Positions 1 to 52,000 of a DNA stretch of 64,000 nucleotides are shown piece after piece. Origin of the DNA: Trichosphaerium sp. ATCC 40318 (lineage: Eukaryota > Protista > Tubulinea); the NCBI GenBank assembly GCA_038496445.1, contig JALMLS010000397.1, forward strand, positions 186,001 through 250,000, read 5' to 3'. A model generated the notes under the pieces. The model was not told the origin of the DNA. It saw only the letters and a list, made by a program, of their open reading frames with translations, and did not search any database. Both the position numbers and the translations under genes were made by a program. How positions within the stretch are numbered: the stretch's first letter is position 1; each line of letters begins with the position of its first letter.

Positions 1-1262
1 AAAAAAAATACTATAGGTGATTTAATAGCTATCGCTGAAGGGCGAAACAACACGCCAACACCAGAAACTTGTTTGCAAGATGGTGGGAAAACAGAAAAGG
101 CACAAGAACAATCAACTTCGCAAAACTTTTCTAAATTGGCATCCAGGCCGTAGTTATTAAGATTTCACACGACAATGGCACGTCTTGGGGTCCCTTGAGA
201 ACTCTTGAATCGTATGAATGCGGTGGAGGATACGAATGCGGATACCAAAACATTGTTGAAGATGTCAAAACAAATAGCTTGTTTATTGCATATTCAACGC
301 ATGTTGGTACTCAAATGATTAGAAGTAACGACTATGGAGTCACGTGGTCAACACCTAAACGACTAAGTGACGGATTTCCAAAAACATTCCGCAACCCAGC
401 TCCTGGACATGGTGTAAGTTTTTCAAGAAGTGTATCTTGATTGCTTATGTATTCTCTTAGCTTCAACTGTTACAACCTTGTATGTCTACCAAGTGTCACC
501 AGTACAGATTAATAATACCATTTGTCTGCTCTATAAATGGAACTGAGCACAGTTGTCTGATTGCTAGTGACGATCATGGAGCCACATGGCATTCAGCTGG
601 AGTAGCACAAGCTGGCTCTAAAGAGGCGCAACTTGTACAAGTACGTTAAGTTGTTGCAATCAATTGCACCCTTTATAACCTTCATTGCAGCTCATTAGCT
701 GTGGTGATGATGGAACGGTTTATTTGAATGCAAGGAATTTTGGAGAAACAAAAGGACACAGATTGAGTGCTTTATCTTTTGATGGCGGAGATACTTTTTC
801 TTCATTTTCTGTTGTGACAGATTTAACAGAACCAGTCACCAACCAATGGACTGGTATAGTAGGATCTTTAATAAGGTAATGCGAACTACTGTAGGTTAAC
901 GCTGTCAATTAATTTTCTGAAATAGGTGGACGTATGCTACTGATACAGGACTCAACAAGTACTTGACTTTTTTTTTTGCTGATAACTAACTCATTTAGGA
1001 TTCTATTTTCAGATCCTGGTGCACAAACTTCAAGGTCTAATTTGACTGTTTACATGACAACAGATGAAACGTCAACATGGCATGAGAGTAAACTTATAAA
1101 TGAAGTCACGTGATTATTGTTAGTAGTAAATTATTAATTTTTTTGTGTTAGGGTCCAAGTGGCTATTCCGATATGGCAAAAATCAGTAACGCCCATGTTG
1201 GCATTCTCTTTGAACGTGGGTCTCCACTTCCATATGACAAGATATCATTCTTGCAATTCTAG
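1..1262 (+). CDS. Sialidase (GH33, BNR/Asp-box beta-propeller), 5'-truncated by the window edge, multi-exon
   Basis: Spliced translation shows GDLIAIAEGR, Asp-boxes SHDNGTSW, SNDYGVTW, SDDHGATW, SFDGGDTF and TTDETSTW, plus YLNAR and GPSGYSDM (nucleophile Tyr). Stop TAG at 1260-1262. Confidence 0.9.
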
Positions 1263-1548
1263 GAACAAAGACGCCTGGAAACACCGCAGCAATAAAGCAT
1301 TATCCAGACGTTGAGTGTATCTGTCTTTGTTTTTACAAACATTTTTGACATGTCGCTATTTACTGACAGCCTTGGTATCATAAAATCTATTACACAGCAT
1401 GGAATTTTCTTGTTAGAAATTAGCAATGACATGCAGTATCTCATTAGCACATGACAATGTTTTTTTGTGCGAGTTCCAGCAAGCCTTCTATTGGCGTATC
1501 TGCTAGAATATTTAGCCATACCTCTAATGGAAGCTCTACATTCTCCAT
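1259..1548 (-). pseudogene. F-box-like gene fragment with frameshift
   Basis: ATG at 1548 gives MENVELPLEVWLNILADTPIEGLLELAQK (F-box-like LPxEV). The frame appears to change at the T8 run near 1460, and the reading ends against the sialidase stop. Confidence 0.4.
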
Positions 1549-1794
1549 TCGAGGTCAAGTGACACCAAAGCTGCTATTTTCAAATCCATTAGAAATAATT
1601 TACCAGTTGTTTCATAATGGTAATAAGTTTTCTAGAAACTGTGCAATCACACATGACACAGCGGTTTTAACTCACTTTTAAACAACTCTTTTAAAAAGAC
1701 AAAGCTGAGAAGTTTTAAAGTTTCAATTACATTCAAGAAAAGTTCCTAACAATGGAGATAACTTTATCTTGTAGATTTAGTTACACAAGGATTA

Positions 1795-3365
1795 TCATTT
1801 GAATACGATTTTCTTAAACTTCTTCTTCCTCCAATATGACAAAGCAACTTTACATAATGTTCTCACATTAGGAATGTAATCCCTGACTTGTTCATGTACA
1901 TCTTGATCATCCAAGTCATCTAAGATTTAGGTTAAACAAGAGTAATGCTTATAAACTTACAGCAAGCTAATTCAGCATATGCTAACAAGAAAGCATACAA
2001 TACATTTATCCCTATTTGTGTTACAAATATAATACTAATGGAAAAAAAGAAAACAAACAGCAAAAGCCTGAGCTTGCTGCAGCATATAACTTTTATCTTG
2101 TACCTTTGATAATGTACACATCAAATATTCTTAAAGCTGCTGGTATACTTCTACGGAACAAAAAACCAGGTACAAAAAGATTAGCACAATCCTGTATCAT
2201 CTTGAAAGAAGAATTATAAAGTTACTCTGCAATAAGACATCGTAGTAAACGTACATAATTGTTAGGGTAAAACTTTGCAAACAGCTCATTGGCTTTGGTG
2301 TACCGGTGAACTAGTTAAGAAAAGCTTAATAAGGTGGGTATATATTTGTGGTTTTCTACTGTTGAGGTTGTTTTCTTACCCCAAAACAGCATTACTGGAT
2401 GCTCTGTCCATTCACCAGTTTTATCATTTTTATTCATTTTATCAAAGATACACTTCATTGTCCAGAAAGCGTGCTAAGAGTTACATTAATATGCAGGAGC
2501 CACCTTATTTGATTACCTCTTCAGGCATAATTGATACGAGCAATGAAGCATAAAATATATCTAATTTCGGGTATGATTAGCATTCTTGTATTATTCTTAT
2601 TGTGACTTTGTTTAACCTACCACCTGAGTATTCTGTTGAGGCTGTAGCTAGATACGCACAAAAGATACGTTTAATCAATATCTTCCTAAATTCTTTAACA
2701 TGATACTACTGGGTTGCCAACTGTACCTTGGTGAACCTTGTCTAAACAAGCGATGATCAGCAGGAAATGATCTGTAGATATCCAGCGGCAAATAAAGTTC
2801 AGCTTTATGATGTTTTTCCCCTTCCTTTTCCTTCTCATATTGATCCAAGTATTCCTTAGTTTTGTTTCAATGAAGTGTTTTCTAACATACAACAACAGTC
2901 AGAAAACTGCTAACCTGATAACTCGTTTTGGATGAATGCATTGCTTCGTAACCACCAGATAAGTGAAAATACGCAAGACCTAAAAAAAGGTAAAACGAAG
3001 TAAAAGAAGATTGAACAAAAAACCACACGTGATATAACTGTTTTGCGTGGAACCACAGTACCTCTGATACCTTTAGGGAAGCCTTTCCAAGCAATTTTTC
3101 TCAGCTATCATTATATTTAGTAAAGCCACATCATTTCATTGAGAAAGCACACACTAGTACCTTTGAACACTCTGCATTCGAGCAGTTGCCACTTGACAGC
3201 TCTTTAAGTCTTGGTTTTAACCATGAGCAAATCTTGGTGTCTTCGACAATCTCTTCAGGAGTGTTGATGCTACATAAAATGTAAGTAATCAATAACAGAA
3301 TGGCGATTGTACAAAGTTAAAAAGTATCGAAGTTTCGCAGATTTGAACGTCATTTTCCTCCCCAT
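1795..3365 (-). CDS. TBC (Rab-GAP)-domain protein, multi-exon; one apparent in-frame TGA (possible pseudogene)
   Basis: Spliced peptides LRKIAWKGFPKGIRG, LDIYRSFPADHRLF (Arg finger), LLVSIMPEEHAFWTM and ALRIFDV. In-frame TGA at 2867-2869 in my model. Confidence 0.7.
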
Positions 3366-3809
3366 TTTTTCGCAGGCTGATTTATCTAGTACGAGAGGTT
3401 TTCTTGTCCAGTAATTGTTGATATGTTCGATCATCCCCTAAACAGAAGTCGGCATTTAAGCAAAGGCTCCTTGCGCCTGGTTTGTACTGTCAACGCATTC
3501 TTTTATTTGAAAATGACATGATCAGAAAACACGTGCATCGTCTCTCAGTAAGTTTTCCCACAAGTTATCACACTCCACGATAGTTTTTACGTATTTACTA
3601 ACTTGTGCTAGTGCTAACAAGTCTTTGATAGGATTATACGCTAGTACGGTTAACCACATTTCTAACGGGAGCTGTACGATCGCCATTATGGGCTCGTCAA
3701 TCTGTCAAATTATTTTGACTACACCAAAGAAATCACGTGACTAAAAGTAAACAGAAAGAGAATAAAGGTTGATATAAACGATATTTATTAGGGCGTGAAC
3801 AAAAGATTT

Positions 3810-6134
<2,325 letters not shown>

Positions 6135-6337
6135 AGTTTTACGGTTTTTTTAGATTGTTTTACATCGTACGTGTTAAACAGATCACCAAAGCAAACACAG
6201 CTATTACTACTCTGCCTGCGCTCATACTGCCGTTAGTATAATGTGCTACAGAGGTTGCCTTAGGCACTATGGCTTAGCAGTTGACCTGATCAAAGTTTTT
6301 TGCCGCTAAAGTCTGTTACATCTTTACTGCTTCGAAA

Positions 6338-8073
6338 ATGGCAACTATAGCACCTAATTACACACGCCAGCTACCAAAGGAGGTAATATACGGTTCAAAA
6401 ATTGTACATTTACGCTTTTTCAGATGCTCCTTGAAATATTTGATTGCTTGCCGTATGATAGTATTCTAGTGATGTTACTTGTATCAAAGCGATGGTTAGC
6501 GATAGGCTCAGAGCGTTTGGTAAGTAAAAGAGTCATTTCACGTTTTAACAGCGCTACAGATGCCCTTGTGCCAAAATTTGTTTCATATGCCACATCAATT
6601 GCCGCCTCAGTACTCTTCTTGGATCTCAGTGTTTACAAAACGTTACCGCGCTTGGGAAAGTATTCAAGATAATATTATGATAATAGGAGGTCAGCCAAGG
6701 GTGTTTTAATTACATGTAAACTGACATTTTGTAAAAGGGCACTGCCCACTTGCAGAAGTAAGTGGTAATGGGCTTAGCGTCGCTATAAACACTACAGGTG
6801 AACTGGATTGGGTACTTTATACGAAATTCTCAATTTTGGTTAACAACTTCGTTATAGAGCTTTTGTAGCCAAAGACCTTTGTTCCCCATCCCTTTTGGCG
6901 TACTGGATGTTCCTGTGCATTATTTCGAAGTGACAGTCACAAGATGGGAAGAAAACGCGTAAGTCTACATACACGCCTTCAAAAACCGCTTCTTTTTCTA
7001 CCATTCGCTTTGAAATTGTTTTTCATGAAAATTCTATTCGTTTGCTCACAACTCCGTCAGCGTTATGACTTGCGGTATTGCACTACCAGATTATGTTAAA
7101 GCACACCCTGGAACACAACCTGGTTGGAATAGAGGATCTATAGGCTACCACGGGGACGACGGTCGTGTGTTTTGTGGTGAGTTATTAATTTTGACTTCAT
7201 TTTGTGCATGTGCGCTGATGCTCTCTCTAGAGGTTGGATTTTCTCCTTCTGCAAGGTTAGAATCTTGGGAAATGGGAGACGTTATTGGATGTGGTTTTGA
7301 TAGAGAACGTTCCATTATATTTTGGACAAGAAACGGCAAGTTGCTTGAGGATGAGGTTGGCTCAGTACGTTACTTTGTTTCCTTTTTTTTTCTTAATGTG
7401 AGGCATTTCGTGGACAGTTTAAATCTTTTTTCGTGTGTTGTACTTGTTCCTTGAGTTAGCGCATTGAATAATTAGATTATCCCGAAACACAATGTGCTGT
7501 CATTTCGAAATGACAATTTTTTTGGTTATTCTGTGAAAGTGTTTTCACAACTAACGTGTATTCAAATAGTATTGGATACCTATCCCAAAGTCTTTTGAAG
7601 GTGTTCATAATATCCATGCTCTTATTGGATTAGATTCTACACGTGCAACTGGAACAATAAATTTTGGTAAGTGCCTTCACTGCACACGTGCACTTTTGAG
7701 GAAATACTAATTTTTTTCGTAGGTGCAACGCCGTTTTTGTTTAGACTTGAGGATTCCAAAGATCTACTAGAAAATTATAATAAGCAAGGTAGAGTTATAG
7801 ATGATAGAGCTGCAGCACGACGTGATAGATTGTTCCAGTTTGTCAGGTTATTACAGCGTATAGAAGAACAAAACAGGTACATCTCAATGAAAATAAAAAA
7901 GCAAAAACAATTTAAACCGTCTTTTGTTTCTGACTTTTTGGTTGTTTAGAGATACAGAAGTTGCTCCTGACGATAGTGACGAAGCTATTGATGATGAAAA
8001 TAATGATAGTGATGATGGGGACGTCGTTATGGATGATGACGCCGATATGGTCGAAGGTGAAGATACCGATTGA
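6338..8073 (+). CDS. F-box + SPRY domain protein, multi-exon
   Basis: QLPKEMLLEIFDCLPYDSILVMLLVSKRW (F-box); HYFEVTV, PGWNRGSIGYHGDDG and GDVIGCGFD..IIFWTRNG (RanBP9-type SPRY); acidic tail. Confidence 0.88.
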
Positions 8074-41957: not shown

Positions 41958-44900
41958 ATGTCCTCAGCTGAAGGTATTTATCGATTGAATGCATTTTTAT
42001 CTTTTTGTCTCGTTGGCTCTTATCTTTACCCTTGCTTGCAGAAAACTCTGCGTCGGTGTCCGCCGAAGAAAACAGAGAGAGCGATAGTATCGAAGTTAGC
42101 GAAAGCGTTAGCGGCGAAGCACCAGTTGTTGTTAAATCTATCAGTATGCAACGACCGATAACTCGTTTTTACCTTATAATTTTTTAGGCAAAGAGTTAGA
42201 AATGCAGCGCAAACAAACCATACGCAAGCTCCCAAAGAACGTAACACAACTCGACCTATCTGCAGAGAAAATCGTTAAAGAAGACGTATGGAAAGCAGAA
42301 AAGAGTTGTATTTCAATCCGTAAGTTCCCTACTACCTTTACTTCGCTCCCAAACACATATTGCTACTAAAGTCCTAATTTTGCTCAGTTTTGAACTGCCG
42401 TATGCTTCTCAGGGAGATGGTTGAATACAAACAATACCAACAGCGTATCGTCAACGTAAGTTCGACTCTATTTGCGCCTTTATTAACGAAGAAATCAGGG
42501 TAAATTGTCGTTGGCCGAAATTAAAGGTCTGTTGGGTCTCTCTGGCACTGAACGTGATGAACCTGATCTAATCAAAGGTACCGATTTAGAGCTTTTTGTA
42601 GTTTACGGCGTTTTTTATTTATTTTGACAACCAATGCTTTTAGTGCATTACTGATCGCTTATATACCTTTAGAAATCATGGAATTGCGTCAGCAACTCAC
42701 GAAGCAATTGCGTAGCAATTTTAAAAAGGAGCGTGAATACAAACGTTTGGAGCAAAAGATTGAATTGCTTATTAGCCACAAATACAATATCGAGGTACGT
42801 AAAGCGCTATGATGTTTGTTTAAGTGCTTAATTCTATGTTGTAGCAAATGGAAAAACCTAAACAGAAAAAAGACAAGAAGAGAAACAGAGAGGTTGTACC
42901 AGTTACTCAAATCACCAAGGCCAAACTTCGCTTGTACTCACAACTCTTGTATGTGTTGCAAACAAAAGCAGAGTACCTTGGAAGATTGTACGTCCGAAAT
43001 CGTCATCGTTATCCCATTTAACTTAATTATTTAGGTCTACGCTTATTACCGCTAAAGAAATGGCTGAATTCCAAACTACTATGATTATTACTCTGTTCGG
43101 TAACGCCTTTTCTCATCGTGAGGAATTCTTGATTCTTGAACTGTTCAGTAAAGCTATTAAGTTTGAAATTGAAAGACACACTGATGTTGGTGCGCGATTT
43201 TGTGGTCTTTTGACGAGTTTTTTCTGTGGCTCACTAGCTTTTTAGAGGATGTCAACAAGTTCACAGAAGAACATGAATCGTCTGTACCAAGAATGGTGTT
43301 GGCGTACAACAGCAGAAAAGCTGGTCAAAACTACCTTACAAGGAACTTCGGAGAGGTCGTACGCGAAGCTATTGCCATTGAAACAAGCTTCGAACTCAAA
43401 CCACTATCTGTACGTAGATTGATTTATGTAATTTATAGCCTAATCGTTTGTCTAGATTTACCTTCGTATGATTAATGAAGAGGAAGTACGCACTGGTAAA
43501 AAATCAAGCAAGCCACGTGCCATTACACCTGAGGAAGCCTTGAAGGATCCTGAAGTAGGTGAAATTATTGAAGAGCGTAAAAAGGCTATTGGTGATGTTT
43601 GCAATTCTTTCCTAAATGTTATTTTGAAGACACTAAAGGTATGATTTTGTTACATATTTTTTTGAAGAAAGTCAATTAATGATTGTGCTTAGGATGTCCC
43701 ATACGGTTTGAGACTCATTTGCAAACGTATTTACGATTACACCCTCGCTAAATACCCAGAAATCAACCCTGTACGTCTCTTTTAAGCGCTTATTGTTGTA
43801 AAAACGACTCATAGCCTTGTAGATCAAAATCTGGAAGGTTGTAGGATACTTTGTATACTACCGTTTCATCAATTTGGTTATTGTACAACCAGATAACTAC
43901 GACTTGTGTAACCACGACGATGTCGGCATCAACGTTCGTAAGAACTTGGTTGTGGTGCGTGCTTTTTTCTTTGCTGGTTTTGGTCATTTGTTCACTGTTA
44001 ATCATCCTTTCTAGATCTCCAAGTTGCTTTACAAAATCTTCGGTTTGGGTAAATTCCCAGAGAAGGCTGAATTCAGCATTCTTAACGAGTTTGTTCTTGC
44101 AACACGTGAGAAGATTCTCGTTTACTTCCAAGATTTGTGCGACGTACAAGAACCAGAACAACATTTGAATATCAACCGTTACAATGAACTCGCCCAAAAA
44201 ACAACACCTTTTGTAATTATTGGTATTAAGGAGCTCGTGCTCACTCACAGACTCCTCGACAAACATATAGCTCAACTCAGCAAAAATAACAAAAAAGATC
44301 CTTTGGCTGTTATTCTAACTGAACTCGGTACGTTTTATACTATTTACATACTGGTGTCTGTTCTTGAGACTTATGTCGTTACTTAGAGGCTGTACCAATT
44401 GACCACGAAGAAGATGAAAAAGAAGTTCAACTAGAGCTTGAGAATCGTTTTGCACCTCGTGCTAGTGAGGAAGTATCACCAGAGCACCTTTATGACCAAA
44501 CAGTCGAATATATCGTACAAATGTTCCGACGCCTCGAAGTCGAGCGTTTCAAGGCCAAGTCCCTCGCTGAAATCCTTAAAGCTGCAAGCAATCACAACAG
44601 TGCGTAATTTCTATCTCACCTTTTTTTGTTTGTGGCTGATGGAAGTGTTAGATAAGGATATTGTTGCCCAAGCAGAAAAGGTAATTGGTAACGTTGAGAC
44701 CCTTAAAGAAAAGGGCAAAATTGCCAAGGATGATGATAATCTCAAGAACCTTCTTCGTGACGTTGCTTTGGAAGTAGCCAATCGTGAAGCAAGACGGGAA
44801 TCACAACGTAAAGAAATTGCTCGTTTGCGAGCAACCAACTCGTCCCTAAAGAAGCATAATGGCTTCTTGGAAGCTCAAAGTGACGAGTTTACAAGTTACC

Positions 44901-45389
44901 TCAAGGTTATGAGACAAGGCATCTTCGAGAAGCGTAAGAAGAAAAAGACCAACAGATTCCAAGGTCTCTTCTCTAAGACAACTGGTACCAAGAAGTTCAG
45001 TTACAAGGAACTCAAGAAACGTCGTGTTATTGTACACTCTGACGTGCCTTCTATCAGGTACGAAGCTTGCTTATTATTTTTTGAAGATCTAACTCTGTTG
45101 TTTTAGTCAACCTAAGACTAAGTTCTTTATCACTACGCCAGAACCTGGTAAATTCGAAGTTGAGGCTAAGATTGGTGGTCTCAGTGTAGGTCAACTTGAG
45201 GTACGTATTCGAGACTAAGAGTTTGTGAAGTTTAGTATGCTAATGTTTTTACTTCAGCTTGATCTTGAGGATCTATTAGAAAAGAAGGAACATAATAAGG
45301 GTGAATTAGATTTGGGTCAAGTCACACTAGATGTGAATATGACACTTTACCTCATCAACAGAGAATTCATTGCAAATTTGAAAAAGTAG
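41958..45389 (+). CDS. IQGAP-related RasGAP protein (GRD + RasGAP_C, no CH domain; Dictyostelium DGAP1/GAPA-like)
   Basis: LEQKIELLI, LFGNAFSHREEFLILELF, VPYGLRLICK, GYFVYYRFINLVIVQPD, LAKLLQNL and KFSYKELKKRRVI. Confidence 0.9.
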
Positions 45390-45621: not shown

Positions 45622-48600
45622 ATGCAGAAAAGTCTCAAAAGACTTCGGTCTGTAATGAGCGCAACCCCTCCTCGAATTGTTGATGATGACGAGCAGCGTC
45701 GGGCTGTACGATGGTCGTCGTACAAATCAGGAGATGAGTCAGAAACAGCCATCGATTTCCTTGTCATGACAGGTTTGCTAGGCGTTGTAGTAATAATATT
45801 AACAGCTTTTCAGGAAGTAATCGCGAGTTTAAAGCGCTTTTCGCTTATTTGAAGCCGTTAGCCGGGGAAGACAGTGTTCGTCGCGTTATTGTGGATAAGA
45901 ATACATGCTATGTTGGTAAAATGGGTGTTTGCAGCGCTGCTCTTTGTTCTTTTAGAAAAATCAAAAAAGACTCTGTGAGCTCTGTTTGCGACTATTTTAA
46001 GCCACGGTACGCGTTTCTGAACTAATTTAGATTGTGTACACAACAATCATGTTAAATCAATTTATAGAGCAGTAATTATAGCAGGAACTGCTCGTGGGAT
46101 ACAGAGCGCTCATGTTGAGCGTGGTGATGTGGTCGTAGCAGAAAAGTAACATTTGTCTGTCATAACAACGACACCACTAACATTGAGCTTACTAGAATAC
46201 TTGAATACGACGTTAATGATGGAGTTTGTACTAAAACAGCAGAGTACGAGGCTGGCGATGTACTAGTAGACCGTTTAAATGATGCTGCGTCCTTCTGGGA
46301 ACCAAGAAACGGTACGTTTAAATACGTAACGTCGGGGGTTATCAGTCAGCCCGATAACAGTGCTGTAGACACAGAAGCAACTGTTCACGTTGGCAACTTA
46401 GTATCAAGCACTACGCAGATGGATAGTAAGATGCTTAAGAGCATATCAAAGGGTTTTGATGAAGTACCTTTGGGCGCTGAGTTAGAACCTCTAACGCCAC
46501 TTGTCCATGAGCATTGTGATGAGTGGATTGTTATAAAAGTACTAAATATCAGATTTCTGAATGTAAAATCAGACTTTATTGGTTCGTTAACGTTTACTGC
46601 TAGGGAGTTAGTAATCGTGATGCTAAAGCAAAGAATTCAGATAAAACAGCTTGTCTTCATGCTGCTGATTTGATTGCTTTTGTGTTGAGTGACGTTGATG
46701 TAATGGAAGGAATTAATCCTCATCATCTTGTTTTGGAAAATGAAGAAGAAGAGAGTGTCACAGAAGTTGAGAGTAGTGCTCCTAATAGTAGTCGTCAAAA
46801 AGAAGAAGAGAGCGAAGGTAGTCTTTCTGAGAGCACGGATAGCGAGTCATCAGACTCAATAGAGGATATGTTATCACCAAAATCGAGTAGCAGTATGGTA
46901 AGTACGCTTATTTGATTTTTCTTACTTCTTTATTTTTTCTTGTTTGTTCTCCAGTTTTGTTAATCTCTGTCTATGCAGTCAGTTACAAAAAAACCTAAAG
47001 GAGTTAAAACTATATTACGGTCTGAGCTTGATTTTGGAGATGATGAGACTTTTCTTGGATCACCCAATATTATCAAAGCTCGTTTTTATGATTCTTCTGT
47101 TTTTGTCAGTTTACTCCCTCATTACACAAAAGAAGAAGTATTTGCTGATGCTACAATATTAAAGTACGTTATTTTGAAAGTATACGAAAATAAGTATGAC
47201 TTTATTTCTAGTCAGTACAATTACCTATTTTTTGGTTCTTTTTTTTTTTTCCCAGTTTGTTCACGTGTTTCTTTTTCTTTTGTCGCCAAGCTAATTTTTT
47301 GTTTTAGAAGTGAATTGGCTAGAAATTTAGTTACGCTTAAAGGTGTTATCACAGAACCTCCTTTCGGCGTGGTTATGTCTACTGAAAAGAAAGGTACTTT
47401 GTATCATTGTATTCATGACAAGCATCTTCACGAAAAATGGGACTTGCTTCAAAAAATATCAATATTGTTTGAAATCACTTGTAGTGTACGCAGTTTACAT
47501 GCTGTTACTGGATTTCGTGGTAAGTAATATCCAAACAAGCAATATTGTCATCTTACTACAACCTAGGTACCTTGACAAGTCATCAAGTTTGGGTAAGATA
47601 ACATACTTCCAGCAGATTTTAGTGTGTTTCTTTTACGTTTCTAATCTTTGTCGCAACAGATTGATAAAACGAATGATGCTCTGTTTTGTCCTTGTCATGA
47701 AGAATCATCTACTTTATGGCACGCACCAGAAGTTATCCTTGGAGAAGCTCCAGATATTCGTTCTAATATATTCAGTATTGGCATAATTATGTAAGTGTGG
47801 TTTTATCCTCAAAAGGTAATAACACTATTGCTTCTTAGGTGGGAACTTTTCTCAGGAGAGCATCCAAGCACTATAGATGTTATAACAGACAAAAAGATAT
47901 CTACGCTAAGTAATGTTCCAGAAGAGTTCGGAAAAATACTTTCTCTTTGTTTGCACAAGGTACCTTACATGCCAAACGTACAGACTGACTAAAATTTTTT
48001 TCTAGGAAGCAGAGAAACGTATGCCATTAACGGACCTTATTGTTGCTTTGAGTACTATACGTAATAAGCTTGAAAGTGCTGGTAAATCACCTTGGTTGAT
48101 TCCAAAGGAAACAGGAACTTTGGGTAACTGGGTATGACGTCTTTGAAGTTTACTTCTTTATTTCTTCTTTTGCATTTTTCTACAAAAGGAACCACTTATC
48201 TTCATCTTTTTCTTTGTCTCACATGATCAATCCTTTCGCAGTAAAAATCAACCTGGTATACAAGTCTTATTGCGGTGTAGGTTGACACTGATGGATATCA
48301 GACATTGACTCTCAAGGATGACAATGGTATTCAACTTCCTGTTGAGTATAGGACTTTGGAAGGAATTTTTGAAAAGTCACTTAAAGGCATAAACTATACG
48401 ATAACAAAAGCAAAAATGATTAATAATCCAACAAACGAGGACGCATTTGCATCATTGTATAAAAGGTATTGATGATAGAGACAAGAAAAGTTGTTTACGT
48501 TTTTTTTTAGGTTTAATGACAGAATGTCTCGAAGTGCGCATGTTTTTGGAGAAGCTTCATGGTTACAGGCAAATATAGTTTAAATCATAATCGCCTTTAT

Positions 48601-50764
48601 TTACTATGTATAGAAAGGTACACCCAAGGTTATAAAACGGCGAAAATGGGTTCATAAGGAGCTCACAAAGTTCGCAAAACAAATACCTGCTAATAAAGGC
48701 AAGAATTGAAAAAACGAAGAAAAAAAAGAAGTGACTATCTTCTGACTGCTTGTTGTAGGTACAAAGGTCTGGGTTGTACCAGTGGTTCATGCGAGCTCTG
48801 AAGGCACTTTAAGAAATATAGCGCGGTCAGGTATGGCCGCTCTAGGCGTTGCTGGTATGTTTTTAGCACGTTCTAAGTTGATACGTATTAAGTTATGATT
48901 AGCGAAATTTCGTACAGATCAGGGTTATTTCGGTAAAGGTATCTATGCAACGAGTCATGTAGAATATTGTGCGGATGTATACGGTAAAAAGAATGACGAA
49001 GGTAAAGCCTTGGCGTTTATGTTTTGAAACAAAAAAGTAATCTCAACGTTTTAGGCGAAATTGTTGTAATGGTTTCATGGGCAGTTCTTGGTAACCCTTT
49101 CCCTGTCATTGAGAATCCAAAGCTTCCAGGCATGAAATGTCCAAAAGGAACAAAATCACTCATGGGCAAGCCCTGTGTTGATGGCTACAGCTCTCACTTT
49201 GTACAACTCACATCAACATCTTGTGTTTATTTTGTTAACTGTTTTATAGGTTGTTGTGCGACCATTGACAGAAAGAAAAGCAGAACGTATTTATGTACCA
49301 TGTACTAGAAAAGAATCAGAAAAAACATCACGTGTACATGATGAATTTGTAAGTCCATGAGTCCAAGATCACGTGATTTTTTTGACGATGTTTTTCAGTG
49401 ATGTTAACTTTCTTTAATTCAATGCTAGGTGTTTTTTATGGACTCACAAGTGTTACCACGGTATATTGTACATATAAAAAAGAGAGAACTAAAAGATGTT
49501 CTTCAATCAAAAGAAAGAACATATGTACAAAGAGTACTTCAACATCATTCTGTAGATTTTGATGGTAGTATGACAAAAGAACATTTGGTATGGTTGGCTC
49601 TTGAAAAGAAAGTTAAAGCGCTGCCGGAGCAAAAACTACCTGCGCAAGTAGATCACACAAGTACGTCTTTATTTATATACAGATACTATAATCCACGCCG
49701 TTAAACAAGAAAGCTCTGAGTAAGAGTAGAAATGATAGCAAAAAACTATTTCAGAGGTATTCATTTTTTTGACTCGTTTTTCCTTTAGATCGTGCAAGAA
49801 CTGTAAGACGGCTTGTTATTAGTGAAGAGAAGTATATTGATATGTTATCTATGTTATTAGATGTACGCCAAACGGATTTATGTTATCAAGTTCTTATGGT
49901 GACTTTTAAAAGGTGTATAAAGTTACTCTTCAGGAGGTTAGGTCTTCCAGTCGTTTTTTGATTCAATCACATATTGATACTATATTTAAACATATCAATG
50001 ATATACGAAAGATACATAAATCAATAGTAAAGAGACTCAAATTTGCTCTTAAACATTGGTCACCTATGCAAGTTATTGGAAAGGTTATAAAGCCTTATGT
50101 ACGTTCATCTTTCTTCTTTTTTTCTTGTCTTTGTTTTTTTCTTATCAACAATGACTACAAAGTTATTTTTTATTCTTCTCAGTATAACTGTTATGCGGTT
50201 GTAACTTTTGACGTTGCAATTACGGTTTTTTGGAGGGTGTCGAGTACTTCGTACTACAAAGAGAATACTAATCTCAATTGGTTGTTTTCTTACATTTTTT
50301 TTGGTTTAGTTGAAGTTTGAGGTTTATAAAGAATATATTGATCACCACTACAAAGCTGTGGGAACAATTTGGGATCTTAAAAAACAGTCTGGGACATTTA
50401 GACGAACTCTTGGACGTTGTGTTGAGCAAACCGGATATACTATTGGACAGCTTTTAAGTTTTGTTTTATCAAGGTAAAAAAACCACGCTTTCTCGTTTTA
50501 TAGTTTATCCACACCCTTGGTTTAATATGTACATAAGGTTTCTAATATTTAATGATATAATGGGAGAGCTATACGATAGTACACCTGACGGGCATCCAGG
50601 TATTGATAAAACACCAAAAACAAAAAAAAATCCTTATCAAATAATTTCAGCCAAAACTGCTCTGGTTCTTTCTCCCCAACTTCTTTTAACTTTAATTACT
50701 CACTATTTTCTTTATAGATAAGCCATTCTTGAAGAGCTGCTGTGAGATATGTTCAAAACGTTAA
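45622..50764 (+). CDS. Multidomain protein: PNP/MTAN-like nucleosidase + TKL pseudokinase + PARP catalytic + RhoGEF (DH), multi-exon
   Basis: Manually spliced continuous frame. PNP: IDFLVMT..E, FKPRAVIIAGTARG, GDVVVA, WIVIKGVSN. Kinase: GTLYHCIH, WHAPE, SIGIIMWEL. PARP: VVH, GYFGKGIYAT, HDEF, QVLPRYIV. DH: RLVISEEKYIDML, DTIFKHI, TPDGHPD. The start codon is uncertain. Confidence 0.8.
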
Positions 50765-51094: not shown

Positions 51095-52000
51095 CTACCA
51101 GTTCTTGCAATAAGCGTTTACAGCTTTTAACAAATCAATACAGCTTTCAGTGATTCTATATCTATCAGAGTAGTGTATTGTATGTACTCCTTTAAGAGCC
51201 TTTACACCTTTGTTAGTCACACGAGTGCAACCAACAACACTGATTTGATGAACTCCTTTAAGAGCTTTAATACCTTCATCTGTAATGCGTCTGAGACCTT
51301 CAAGGTCAATAGTATGAACCCCAGCAAGGGCTTTAATGCCTTCATCTGTTACCTGGTGACAACCTCTAAGATTAATAGTATGAACACCTTTGAGTGCTTT
51401 GATGCCTCTATGTGTGACTAGGGAACAATCTCTAAGATTAATAGTATGTACACCTTTGAGAGCTTTAAGTCCCTCATCTGTCAGTTTTTTACAGTCTGAA
51501 CAATCAATCGTGTGAACTCCAGCAAGATATTTCATACCTTCACTTGTAATATACGTGTCTCTAAGGTTAATGGTATGAACACCTTTTAAATATTTAATGC
51601 CTTCATCTGTTATTTTCCTACAGTGCACAAGGTTGATTGAATGAACACCTTGAAATCTTTTCAAATCTTCATCAGAAACCAGTGATGTTTCTATTTGTTT
51701 GATATTTCTACAACCACCAAACAGTGACAGGTAAGTATCCTTCATGTCTATCACAAGTATACTACTATTTTTCATGACACCTTTATATTGCATAACCTTT
51801 AGAATGTCAGGGTGGTTACTGATAGTAACTGTCTTGTATCCAACAATATTGTGGATTAAGTCAGCCATAAGGTGACATGATTGAGCAACAGAAAATCTTG
51901 ACTTTGAATCAGTATGATGAAGAATGGTTGCGATGACTTCAGGTGGGAAATCAATAATATTACATTCTTCTCGTTTATCGAGCCTGTTGCTTTCATTCTC
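51095..52000 (-). CDS. F-box-like + LRR protein, paralog of 18771-19946 (first exon uncertain)
   Basis: The frame extends upstream of the listed ORF to IIDFPPEVIATIL..SVAQSCHLM; ITDEGIKALKGVHTINL repeats follow. Confidence 0.88.
   Translation of the reverse strand, partial: ENESNRLDKREECNIIDFPPEVIATILHHTDSKSRFSVAQSCHLMADLIHNIVGYKTVTISNHPDILKVMQYKGVMKNSSILVIDMKDTYLSLFGGCRNIKQIETSLVSDEDLKRFQGVHSINLVHCRKITDEGIKYLKGVHTINLRDTYITSEGMKYLAGVHTIDCSDCKKLTDEGLKALKGVHTINLRDCSLVTHRGIKALKGVHTINLRGCHQVTDEGIKALAGVHTIDLEGLRRITDEGIKALKGVHQISVVGCTRVTNKGVKALKGVHTIHYSDRYRITESCIDLLKAVNAYCKNW

Follow-up and report, generated by a model that had tools for sequence, protein, structure and literature searches.

Here, we describe a 24-exon gene at positions 45622..50764 (+) of a stretch of 64,000 nucleotides of DNA from Trichosphaerium sp. 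ATCC 40318 (contig JALMLS010000397.1, positions 186,001 to 250,000; hereafter the window). Its product would line up, from the N- to the C-terminus, a domain resembling the PNP_UDP_1 nucleosidases, an acidic and Ser-rich linker, a pseudokinase, a PARP, a helical linker, and a terminal DH (RhoGEF) domain. The gene is real, as most of its exon structure is expressed and the linkage of the kinase, PARP, and DH parts was seen in RNA, whereas the join between the PNP-like part and the kinase part (intron 46898-46978) is predicted. With a confidence slightly better than even, we read it as one lineage-specific multidomain signalling gene in which the PARP would be the only clearly live enzyme. What is new is how known domains are arranged, and the gene does not represent a new kind of system.

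Gene model and transcript evidence

The window is eukaryotic, with a GC content of ~37 % and short GT-AG introns. The gene model was assembled by reading the three frames together with the splice sites on the forward strand, to which all coordinates of the gene refer. It extends from an ATG at 45622-45624 to a TAA at 50762-50764 and yields a coding sequence of 3216 nucleotides (nt) for a product of 1071 amino acids (aa), in a single frame with 0 internal stops. Thus, the extent and the single frame given for this gene by a first-pass annotation were recovered with the same start and stop codons. The exons and introns average 134 and 84 nt, respectively, and these sizes, as well as the GC content, are consistent with the figures of the published draft genome of Trichosphaerium (GC 37.7 %, mean intron 75 nt, mean exon 154 nt; PMC10521059).

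In spliced RNA contigs from two runs, 11 of the 23 introns were seen as GT..AG joints or as a loose end. In the 5' part of the gene these are the junctions 46145/46196, 46311/46369, 47790/47839, 47959/48006, and 48131/48281, and in the 3' part 49200/49250, 49348/49429, 49660/49789, 50098/50310, 50473/50538, and 50599/50718. Two of them bear directly on the domain linkage: 48131/48281 connects the kinase C-lobe exon with the exon at which the PARP begins, and at 49660/49789 the exon that encodes the C-terminus of the PARP and the linker is spliced to the one opening the DH domain. Furthermore, an RNA contig (50716-50787) passes through the stop codon. The RNA depth of the gene is low, and its start (exon 1) lies outside the RNA coverage. 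Of the earlier proposal that splice phases connect all four domains in one frame, the kinase-PARP-DH joins have therefore been observed in RNA, while the join of the PNP-like domain to the kinase stays at the level of a prediction.

Two introns in the 5' half deserve attention. The first, 46312-46368 (+), comprises 57 nt that keep the frame and contain no stop, and was revealed by an RNA joint of run X1 (46310>46368, cut +1, GT..AG); it had been overlooked in the first-pass annotation. Its retention would add 19 residues to the PNP-like domain and leave the reading frame intact. The second is the predicted 81-nt intron 46898-46978 (+; GTAAGT...CAG) between the PNP-like and kinase parts, whose retention would introduce a stop at 46913-46915, with an in-frame ATG at 46973-46975. 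Further downstream, the stretch 48466-48758 allows 36 alternative in-frame splice paths, and brute-force enumeration over 48466-49079 returned hundreds of them, so that continuity of the frame in this part is no evidence by itself. Apart from these, a T-rich intron stretch at 50110-50143 was matched at 90-95 % by many high-depth contigs of 31-78 nt (runs X1 and X4), which suggests a pyrimidine-rich element, dispersed or of low complexity, and not expression of the four-domain gene.

Domains of the predicted protein

Domain searches were run exon by exon, and as the exons encode only 7-98 aa, the power of these searches was low. The four-domain layout proposed beforehand was recovered with unequal clarity, as the DH domain and the kinase C-lobe were found by Pfam and Protein Data Bank (PDB) matches and the PARP by alignment and Atlas neighbours, whereas the PNP-like domain emerged only from a tiling on Cap17 proteins. 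At the level of profiles, the RhoGEF and Pkinase calls returned weak matches, but the PNP_UDP_1 and PARP calls had none exon-wise.

Judged by alignment, we accept that the third domain is an ADP-ribosyltransferase of the PARP type in which the H-Y-E triad is intact. Its His motif VVPVVHASS is located in exon 15 (48759..48854, His 48788-48790; predicted junctions), its Tyr motif GYFGKGIYAT, aligned to G.GiYFA, in exon 16 (48903..49001, Tyr 48944-48946), and the catalytic Glu, within HDEF, in exon 18 (49250..49348, Glu 49343-49345; both junctions in RNA). Exon 17 (49055..49200, with an RNA contig 49079-49200 joined to 49250) would form the middle sheet, and exon 19 (49429..49660, RNA joints on both sides) contributes the last PARP strands VFFMDSQVLPRYIVHIKK followed by a linker of 60 aa. 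The N-terminal part of the domain is assigned to exon 13 (48281..48465; RNA contig joined to exon 12), which had no profile or PDB match, and is followed by an uncertain exon 14 of 23 nt (48511..48533) with a GTGCGC donor.

For comparison, bacterial PARP genes were fished with a degenerate DNA pattern for W-H-G-[ST]...G-x-G-[IV]-Y-F-A, which retrieved 107 loci versus ~8 expected by chance; the two loci that were checked carry PF00644 at E 7e-47 and 2e-27. A hidden Markov model (HMM) of 21 bacterial PARP domains placed exon 16 (GYFGKGIYAT) with P 0.0035 and exon 19 (VFFMDSQVLPRYIV) with P 0.002 relative to shuffled sequences (Fisher 0.025). In an alignment of 49 bacterial PF00644 domains, the His of exon 15, the Tyr of exon 16, and the Glu of exon 18 all fall on invariant columns, in agreement with the triad (VVH, GIY, DEF) named in the first-pass annotation, and the column of the catalytic Glu had played no part in the fishing. 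In addition, exon 19 begins in the column right after the end of exon 18. Shuffled exons reach each of these placements 8-32 % of the time, and all of them jointly at ~4e-4. At lead level, the top three named Atlas clusters for a 42-aa open segment around exon 16 were all PF00644 (0.86-0.89). Taken by its residues, the PARP is probably enzymatically active. As in PF00644 members, H, Y, and E lie on invariant columns and a Q..P.Y[IL]V strand is present at the C-terminus; unlike in the usual PARP, the His motif reads H-A-S in place of H-G-[ST], and the domain has a pseudokinase on one side and a DH domain on the other, without WGR, regulatory, macro, or ankyrin modules. As a side observation, many of the 107 bacterial loci stem from Spirosomataceae, Lachnospiraceae/Oscillospiraceae, Myxococcota, and Armatimonadota, and one of the two checked genes also contains a WGR and a PARP regulatory domain.

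The kinase module, read from exons 7 to 12, is by its motifs a TKL-like pseudokinase in which the catalytic Lys, the Asp of HRD, the Asn of the catalytic loop, and DFG are lost. Exon 7 (46979..47163; read from sequence) would encode the N-lobe, with LGSPN at the Gly loop and VFVSLL in the place of VAIK, and exon 8 (47308..47519; predicted junctions) the part from the hinge to the catalytic loop, with F-R-(G) at 47513-47519 in the HRD place. The Gly of FRG rests on exon 9, a predicted 26-nt micro-exon (47567..47592; TLTSHQVW, with LTSHQ at the catalytic-loop Asn) that has canonical TAG/GTAAGA sites and is needed for the frame, because direct 47519>47660 splicing runs into a stop. Exon 10 (47660..47790; 3' junction in RNA) reads CPC (47687-47695) for DFG. 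These readings, made by eye, match the first-pass annotation, which had described the kinase as devoid of the VAIK Lys, HRD, and DFG. The C-lobe is better preserved: WHAPEV and SIGIIMWEL are kept (WHAPEV and SIGII in exon 10), as is an Arg-containing helix, and the lobe continues through exon 11 (47839..47959; both junctions in RNA) and exon 12 (48006..48131; both junctions in RNA, contig 48022-48130 joined to 48280-48431), where it ends in a linker. On exon 10, the Pfam Pkinase profile matched at E 0.02 (profile positions 146-187), and in PDB five of the seven best matches were STE20-type kinases, with alignments of STK25 and MST4 that cover the APE region; for the N-lobe, there was no Pfam match. 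TKL-type pseudokinases, such as MLKL-type proteins and the decoy pseudokinases of plants, serve as scaffolds or decoys. The protein described here resembles them in keeping the C-lobe and losing the catalytic residues, but differs in that its N-lobe is too divergent for Pfam and no relatives were found.

The C-terminal domain displays colinear matches to the DH domains of Dbl-family RhoGEFs. On exon 21 (49913..50098; 3' junction in RNA) the Pfam RhoGEF profile matched at E 1.9e-4 (22.1 bits, profile positions 25-84), and on exon 22 (50310..50473; both junctions in RNA) at E 0.039 (14.6 bits, profile positions 84-133), versus a cut-off of 27.6 bits; the two exons are consecutive and their matches colinear on the profile. 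Furthermore, 10 of the 13 PDB matches of exon 21 were DH domains (Vav, ECT2L, BCR, and P-Rex1). The presumed DH start RRLVISEEKYIDML in exon 20 (49789..49862; 5' junction in RNA) had no Pfam or PDB match alone, and the PDB searches with exons 20 and 22 gave nothing. The DH domain ends in exon 23 (50538..50599; both junctions in RNA contig X2), which carries a shortened CR3 region: with the RNA-supported splice 50473/50538 the CR3 helix is ~6 residues shorter than with the alternative 50457/50502. This alternative (donor GTTTTG, 44-nt intron), although not seen in RNA, would give LLIYPHPWFNMYIRFLIF and better fit the usual length of the DH helix, and may represent an alternative isoform. As, in addition, the CR1 Glu reads Arg by eye, the exchange activity of the DH domain is uncertain. 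Unlike the DH-PH proteins of the Dbl family, the protein has no PH domain after the DH: exon 24 (50718..50764) adds the last 15 residues and the stop TAA, and the next gene is ~330 nt away. The absence of a PH domain had been noted before and was corroborated by the RNA contig running through the stop codon. By contrast, a short HeH/SAP-like motif claimed to precede the DH domain, in the linker of exon 19, is not supported: no family matched 49429-49660 at E up to 10, and the consensus Gly of SAP is missing.

The N-terminal domain was compared with E. coli Cap17 and 120 family members, the gene having been located via 79 nt of cap17 DNA given in the supplementary table of the preprint. It is assigned to exons 1 to 6. 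Exon 1 (45622..45772; predicted, donor GTTTGC) contains the start codon, an N-terminal tail of 43 aa, and the first PNP-like strand AIDFLVMT, and exon 2 (45814..46006; predicted, with an RNA contig ending inside it at 45970) a conserved Glu in REF (45825-45827). Exon 3 (46068..46145; its 3' junction being the loose end at 46145/46196) encodes the core AVIIAGTARGIQSAHVERGDVVVAE, and exon 4 (46196..46311; RNA contig 46196-46310 jointed to 46368/9) the variable middle. Exon 5 (46369..46538; 5' end joint in RNA) reads VHVGNL...AELEP...WIVIK, and exon 6 (46604..46897; devoid of RNA) closes the domain with GVSNRDAKAKN... before the acidic/Ser-rich linker.

A Cap17-family HMM run over the six exons gave P 0.005 for exon 3 and P 0.015 for exon 4 relative to shuffles, which amounts to a marginal Fisher value of 0.03. 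In an alignment of the family, five separately placed exon pieces (exons 1, 3, 4, 5, and 6) tile the Cap17 PNP domain in order, at columns 4-14, 87-110, 112 onward, 184-236, and 237-276, abutting at 110/112 and 236/237; none of 200,000 shuffled sets did the same. In this arrangement, SETAIDFLVMT of exon 1 lies on the first strand of the Cap17 PNP domain, exon 3 on Cap17 KVLMMGIAAGLREKMVLGEVIISE, where it scores at the expected HMM positions, exon 4 two columns past the end of exon 3, exon 5 on ATIASGE...AEME...LIVR, and GVSNRDAKAKN of exon 6 on GISDFGDSTKD, in the column directly after exon 5. From this alignment, a true relationship of the N-terminal domain to PNP_UDP_1 appears quite likely. 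It would share with Cap17 and DtcC the colinear first strand, the G.A.G loop, the GDVVV strand, the E.E motif, and the [KR]G[IV]S strand, and with the eukaryotic PNP fusions described by Rousset et al. 2023 the N-terminal placement in a multidomain, signalling-type protein.

The domain differs from Cap17 and DtcC in having no profile-level match and, above all, in its active site. At the position of Cap17 D472 it carries Asn (46613-46615), as the protein reads KGVSNRDA versus RG[IV][ST]D.GD, although Asp occupies this position in 120 of 120 Cap17 family members. D472 is part of RGISDFGD, and the D472A primer of Table S7 encodes ISAFGD; defence was abolished by Cap17 D472A (10.1101/2023.01.24.525353) and likewise by DtcC D353A. 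Other Cap17-invariant sites are also changed, namely GTARG for GIAAG, VGN for SGE, and DA for GD, while the N-terminal Glu (TAL..EL) has been retained, as has the E.E motif. Given that the invariant catalytic Asp is now Asn and further invariant residues are changed, ATP nucleosidase activity of the PNP-like domain is unlikely. The first-pass annotation, which had called the domain a nucleosidase in the Cap17/Detocs sense, had missed this substitution and has to be revised on this point; its wording of a 'nucleotide-sensing scaffold' fits better with an Asn at the catalytic site than an effector does. In E. coli MTAN, the equivalent Asp-to-Asn mutant D197N binds the substrate and does not cleave it. 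Because related nucleosidase mutants of this kind bind without cleaving, the pocket of the PNP-like domain may still bind an adenine nucleotide. As a side observation on the reference locus, the E. coli EcPF14 chromosome (455-4015) carries the type III CBASS (cyclic oligonucleotide-based antiphage signalling system) of the Cap17 paper, consisting of cyclase, WYL regulator, and Cap17 and adjoining IS3 and IS110 remnants; RefSeq labels Cap17 in this strain as MTA/SAH nucleosidase.

Proposed function and competing readings

Considering the domains together, we propose that the PNP-like domain has its origin in the PNP_UDP_1 fold, in its Cap17/NLR-type branch, and lost its catalytic Asp together with several other residues invariant in the family, and that the two dead enzyme folds, i.e. 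the PNP-like domain and the pseudokinase, would serve as regulators by binding ligands or by docking. The PARP would consume NAD+ in modifying itself or proteins kept close to it, and the DH domain would bind, and perhaps activate, a Rho/Rac GTPase, either as an output or as a recruiter of substrate. The protein would thus not be an ATP-depleting effector. Coupling of ADP-ribosylation to Rho/Rac signalling is plausible from the architecture. An immune or stress role of the four-domain protein is suggested by analogy, as members of the Cap17 clade are associated with immunity in bacteria and fungi. In a more specific version, which we regard as a long shot, the Asp-to-Asn PNP-like domain would be a 'substrate-trap' sensor of an ATP or adenine-nucleotide signal, gating the PARP writer and the Rho-GTPase-binding DH domain via the pseudokinase.

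Several observations weigh against reading the locus as one signalling gene with these four domains. Every functional step in it is inferred. The conditions for the Cap17 tiling were set post hoc, after the placements had been seen; the fit of exon 2 to its Cap17 segment is not significant (z 1.3), and identity at Cap17-invariant columns does not exceed that of shuffles (19 versus a mean of 14.5, P 0.13). None of the exons by itself attains a Pfam gathering score: the PNP-like exons had no PNP_UDP_1 or PADLOC match at E up to 10, and the PARP profile had no exon-wise match in Pfam or PDB. An exhaustive phmmer search with a 114-aa PNP-like piece (46197-46538) against 1.84 billion proteins retrieved no true relative, and no orthologue or paralogue was found in the collections searched, hence there is no evidence that the architecture is conserved. 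The Atlas neighbours of the same 114-aa piece were, weakly, cNMP-binding clusters; this lead was discounted, since the shared features numbered fewer than 170 and the query included residues coded by an intron. At the transcript level, no RNA contig covers 46522-47082, including the predicted intron 46898-46978 that joins the PNP-like and kinase parts, and neither the micro-exon 47567-47592 nor the stretch 48466-48758 has RNA support.

Some of these points would be equally expected if the N-terminal 270 aa were unrelated to PNP_UDP_1 and represented another or a novel fold with a motif likeness arising by chance, a reading that we consider unlikely but worth keeping in mind. It would account for the lack of matches in Pfam, PADLOC, PDB, and the representative library, for the cNMP-binding neighbours in the Atlas, for the invariant-column matches not above shuffles, and for the poor fit of exon 2. 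The queries, however, were short, and one contained the 19-aa intron read-through. Moreover, exon 3 scored at the expected HMM positions with P 0.005, and exons 1, 3, 4, 5, and 6 were placed independently and yet came out in order and abutting, an outcome found in 0 of 200,000 shuffled sets. The gap in RNA coverage over 46522-47082 leaves room for two adjacent genes, one for a PNP-like protein ending with the TGA at 46913-46915 and another for a pseudokinase-PARP-DH protein starting from the in-frame ATG at 46973, since this stop and this ATG both exist. We judge such a split improbable: only 57 nt would lie between stop and start, compared to real intergenic gaps of ~230 and ~330 nt, and the 81 nt include a GTAAGT donor, a T-rich tract, and a CAG acceptor, come near the mean intron of the genome in length, and leave the frame intact when spliced out (46898-46978).

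Other readings concern what the protein does. That the N-terminal domain works as an active ATP nucleosidase effector in the manner of Cap17 or DtcC, which would make the protein an immune executioner triggered via its other domains, would be in line with the N-terminal placement of the domain, as in fungal PNP-NLR proteins, with the retained Glu of TAL..EL and the E.E motif, and with the activity that eukaryotic members of the clade show in vitro (10.1101/2023.01.24.525353). The Asn at the equivalent of Cap17 D472 and DtcC D353, together with GTARG, VGN, and DA at invariant sites, renders it very improbable indeed, as D472A and D353A abolish function. Finally, the gene could be a decaying or non-functional fusion, a recent product of rampant domain shuffling with low transcription and no selected function. 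Catalytic residues have been lost in two, perhaps three domains (if the Arg seen by eye at the CR1 Glu of the DH domain is counted), CR3 is shortened in the only RNA-supported isoform, no relatives were found, and the RNA depth is low. Nevertheless, 24 exons remain in frame over 3.2 kb with no stop, the splice sites are intact and used, and both the triad of the PARP and the motifs of the kinase C-lobe are still present, which makes decay a poor prospect in our estimation. We continue to favour a single signalling gene with the PARP as its only clearly live enzyme.

Relatives, neighbours, and biological meaning

Searches aimed at relatives of the gene retrieved none. Two phmmer matches of 46197-46538 turned out, when checked with Pfam, to be repeat-protein artefacts. 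PDB searches with the PNP-like exons had no match, tblastn of the 120 Cap17 proteins against the window gave noise-level matches only, and word-based searches with the open segments of kinase and PARP retrieved no relatives. The only metagenome match of the kinase exon (contig 5842-6471) was traced to a chance nine-residue GVITEPPFG within a phage-like block of structural genes. Scans of viral contigs likewise retrieved no relatives of the four-domain gene; one motif match there belonged to an ATP-grasp gene and was dismissed as no relative.

The gene is flanked by two distinct neighbours with their own profile matches. Upstream lies an IQGAP-type gene, with RasGAP_C at E 6e-19 at 44627-45106 (+) and continuing to ~45389; it is a separate gene, ~230 nt from its end to the ATG at 45622. 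Downstream, at 51095-51868 (-), a convergent gene encodes approximately nine near-identical 'KALKGVHTINLRDC..VTDEGI' repeats (LRR_6, E 4.5e-16), and ~330 nt separate its end from the stop of the four-domain gene.

Our literature search found no description of a PNP-like/pseudokinase/PARP/DH architecture. The eukaryotic partners of PNP domains reported so far by Rousset et al. 2023 are NLR, CHAT, Argonaute, STING, Roc-COR, and death domains (10.1101/2023.01.24.525353). The pseudokinase, PARP, and DH partners described here are not among them, and the part of Table S6 of that study available to us holds no 'PARP', 'RhoGEF', or 'Amoebozoa' entry. As a single orphan gene without known relatives, the locus offers a lead for experiments and no general principle. 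If the model holds, it would provide a direct physical link between a PARP and a RhoGEF, for which we found no paper describing the like. If, furthermore, the substrate-trap reading were true, the protein would represent a new kind of sensor for stress or immunity acting cell-autonomously in Amoebozoa, with the fold of a bacterial-type ATP-nucleosidase effector turned into a receptor. If the model holds, with or without this reading, an ATP-destroying immune fold known from bacteria to fungi and sponges would survive in a protist as a module of a signalling protein, its catalysis disabled.

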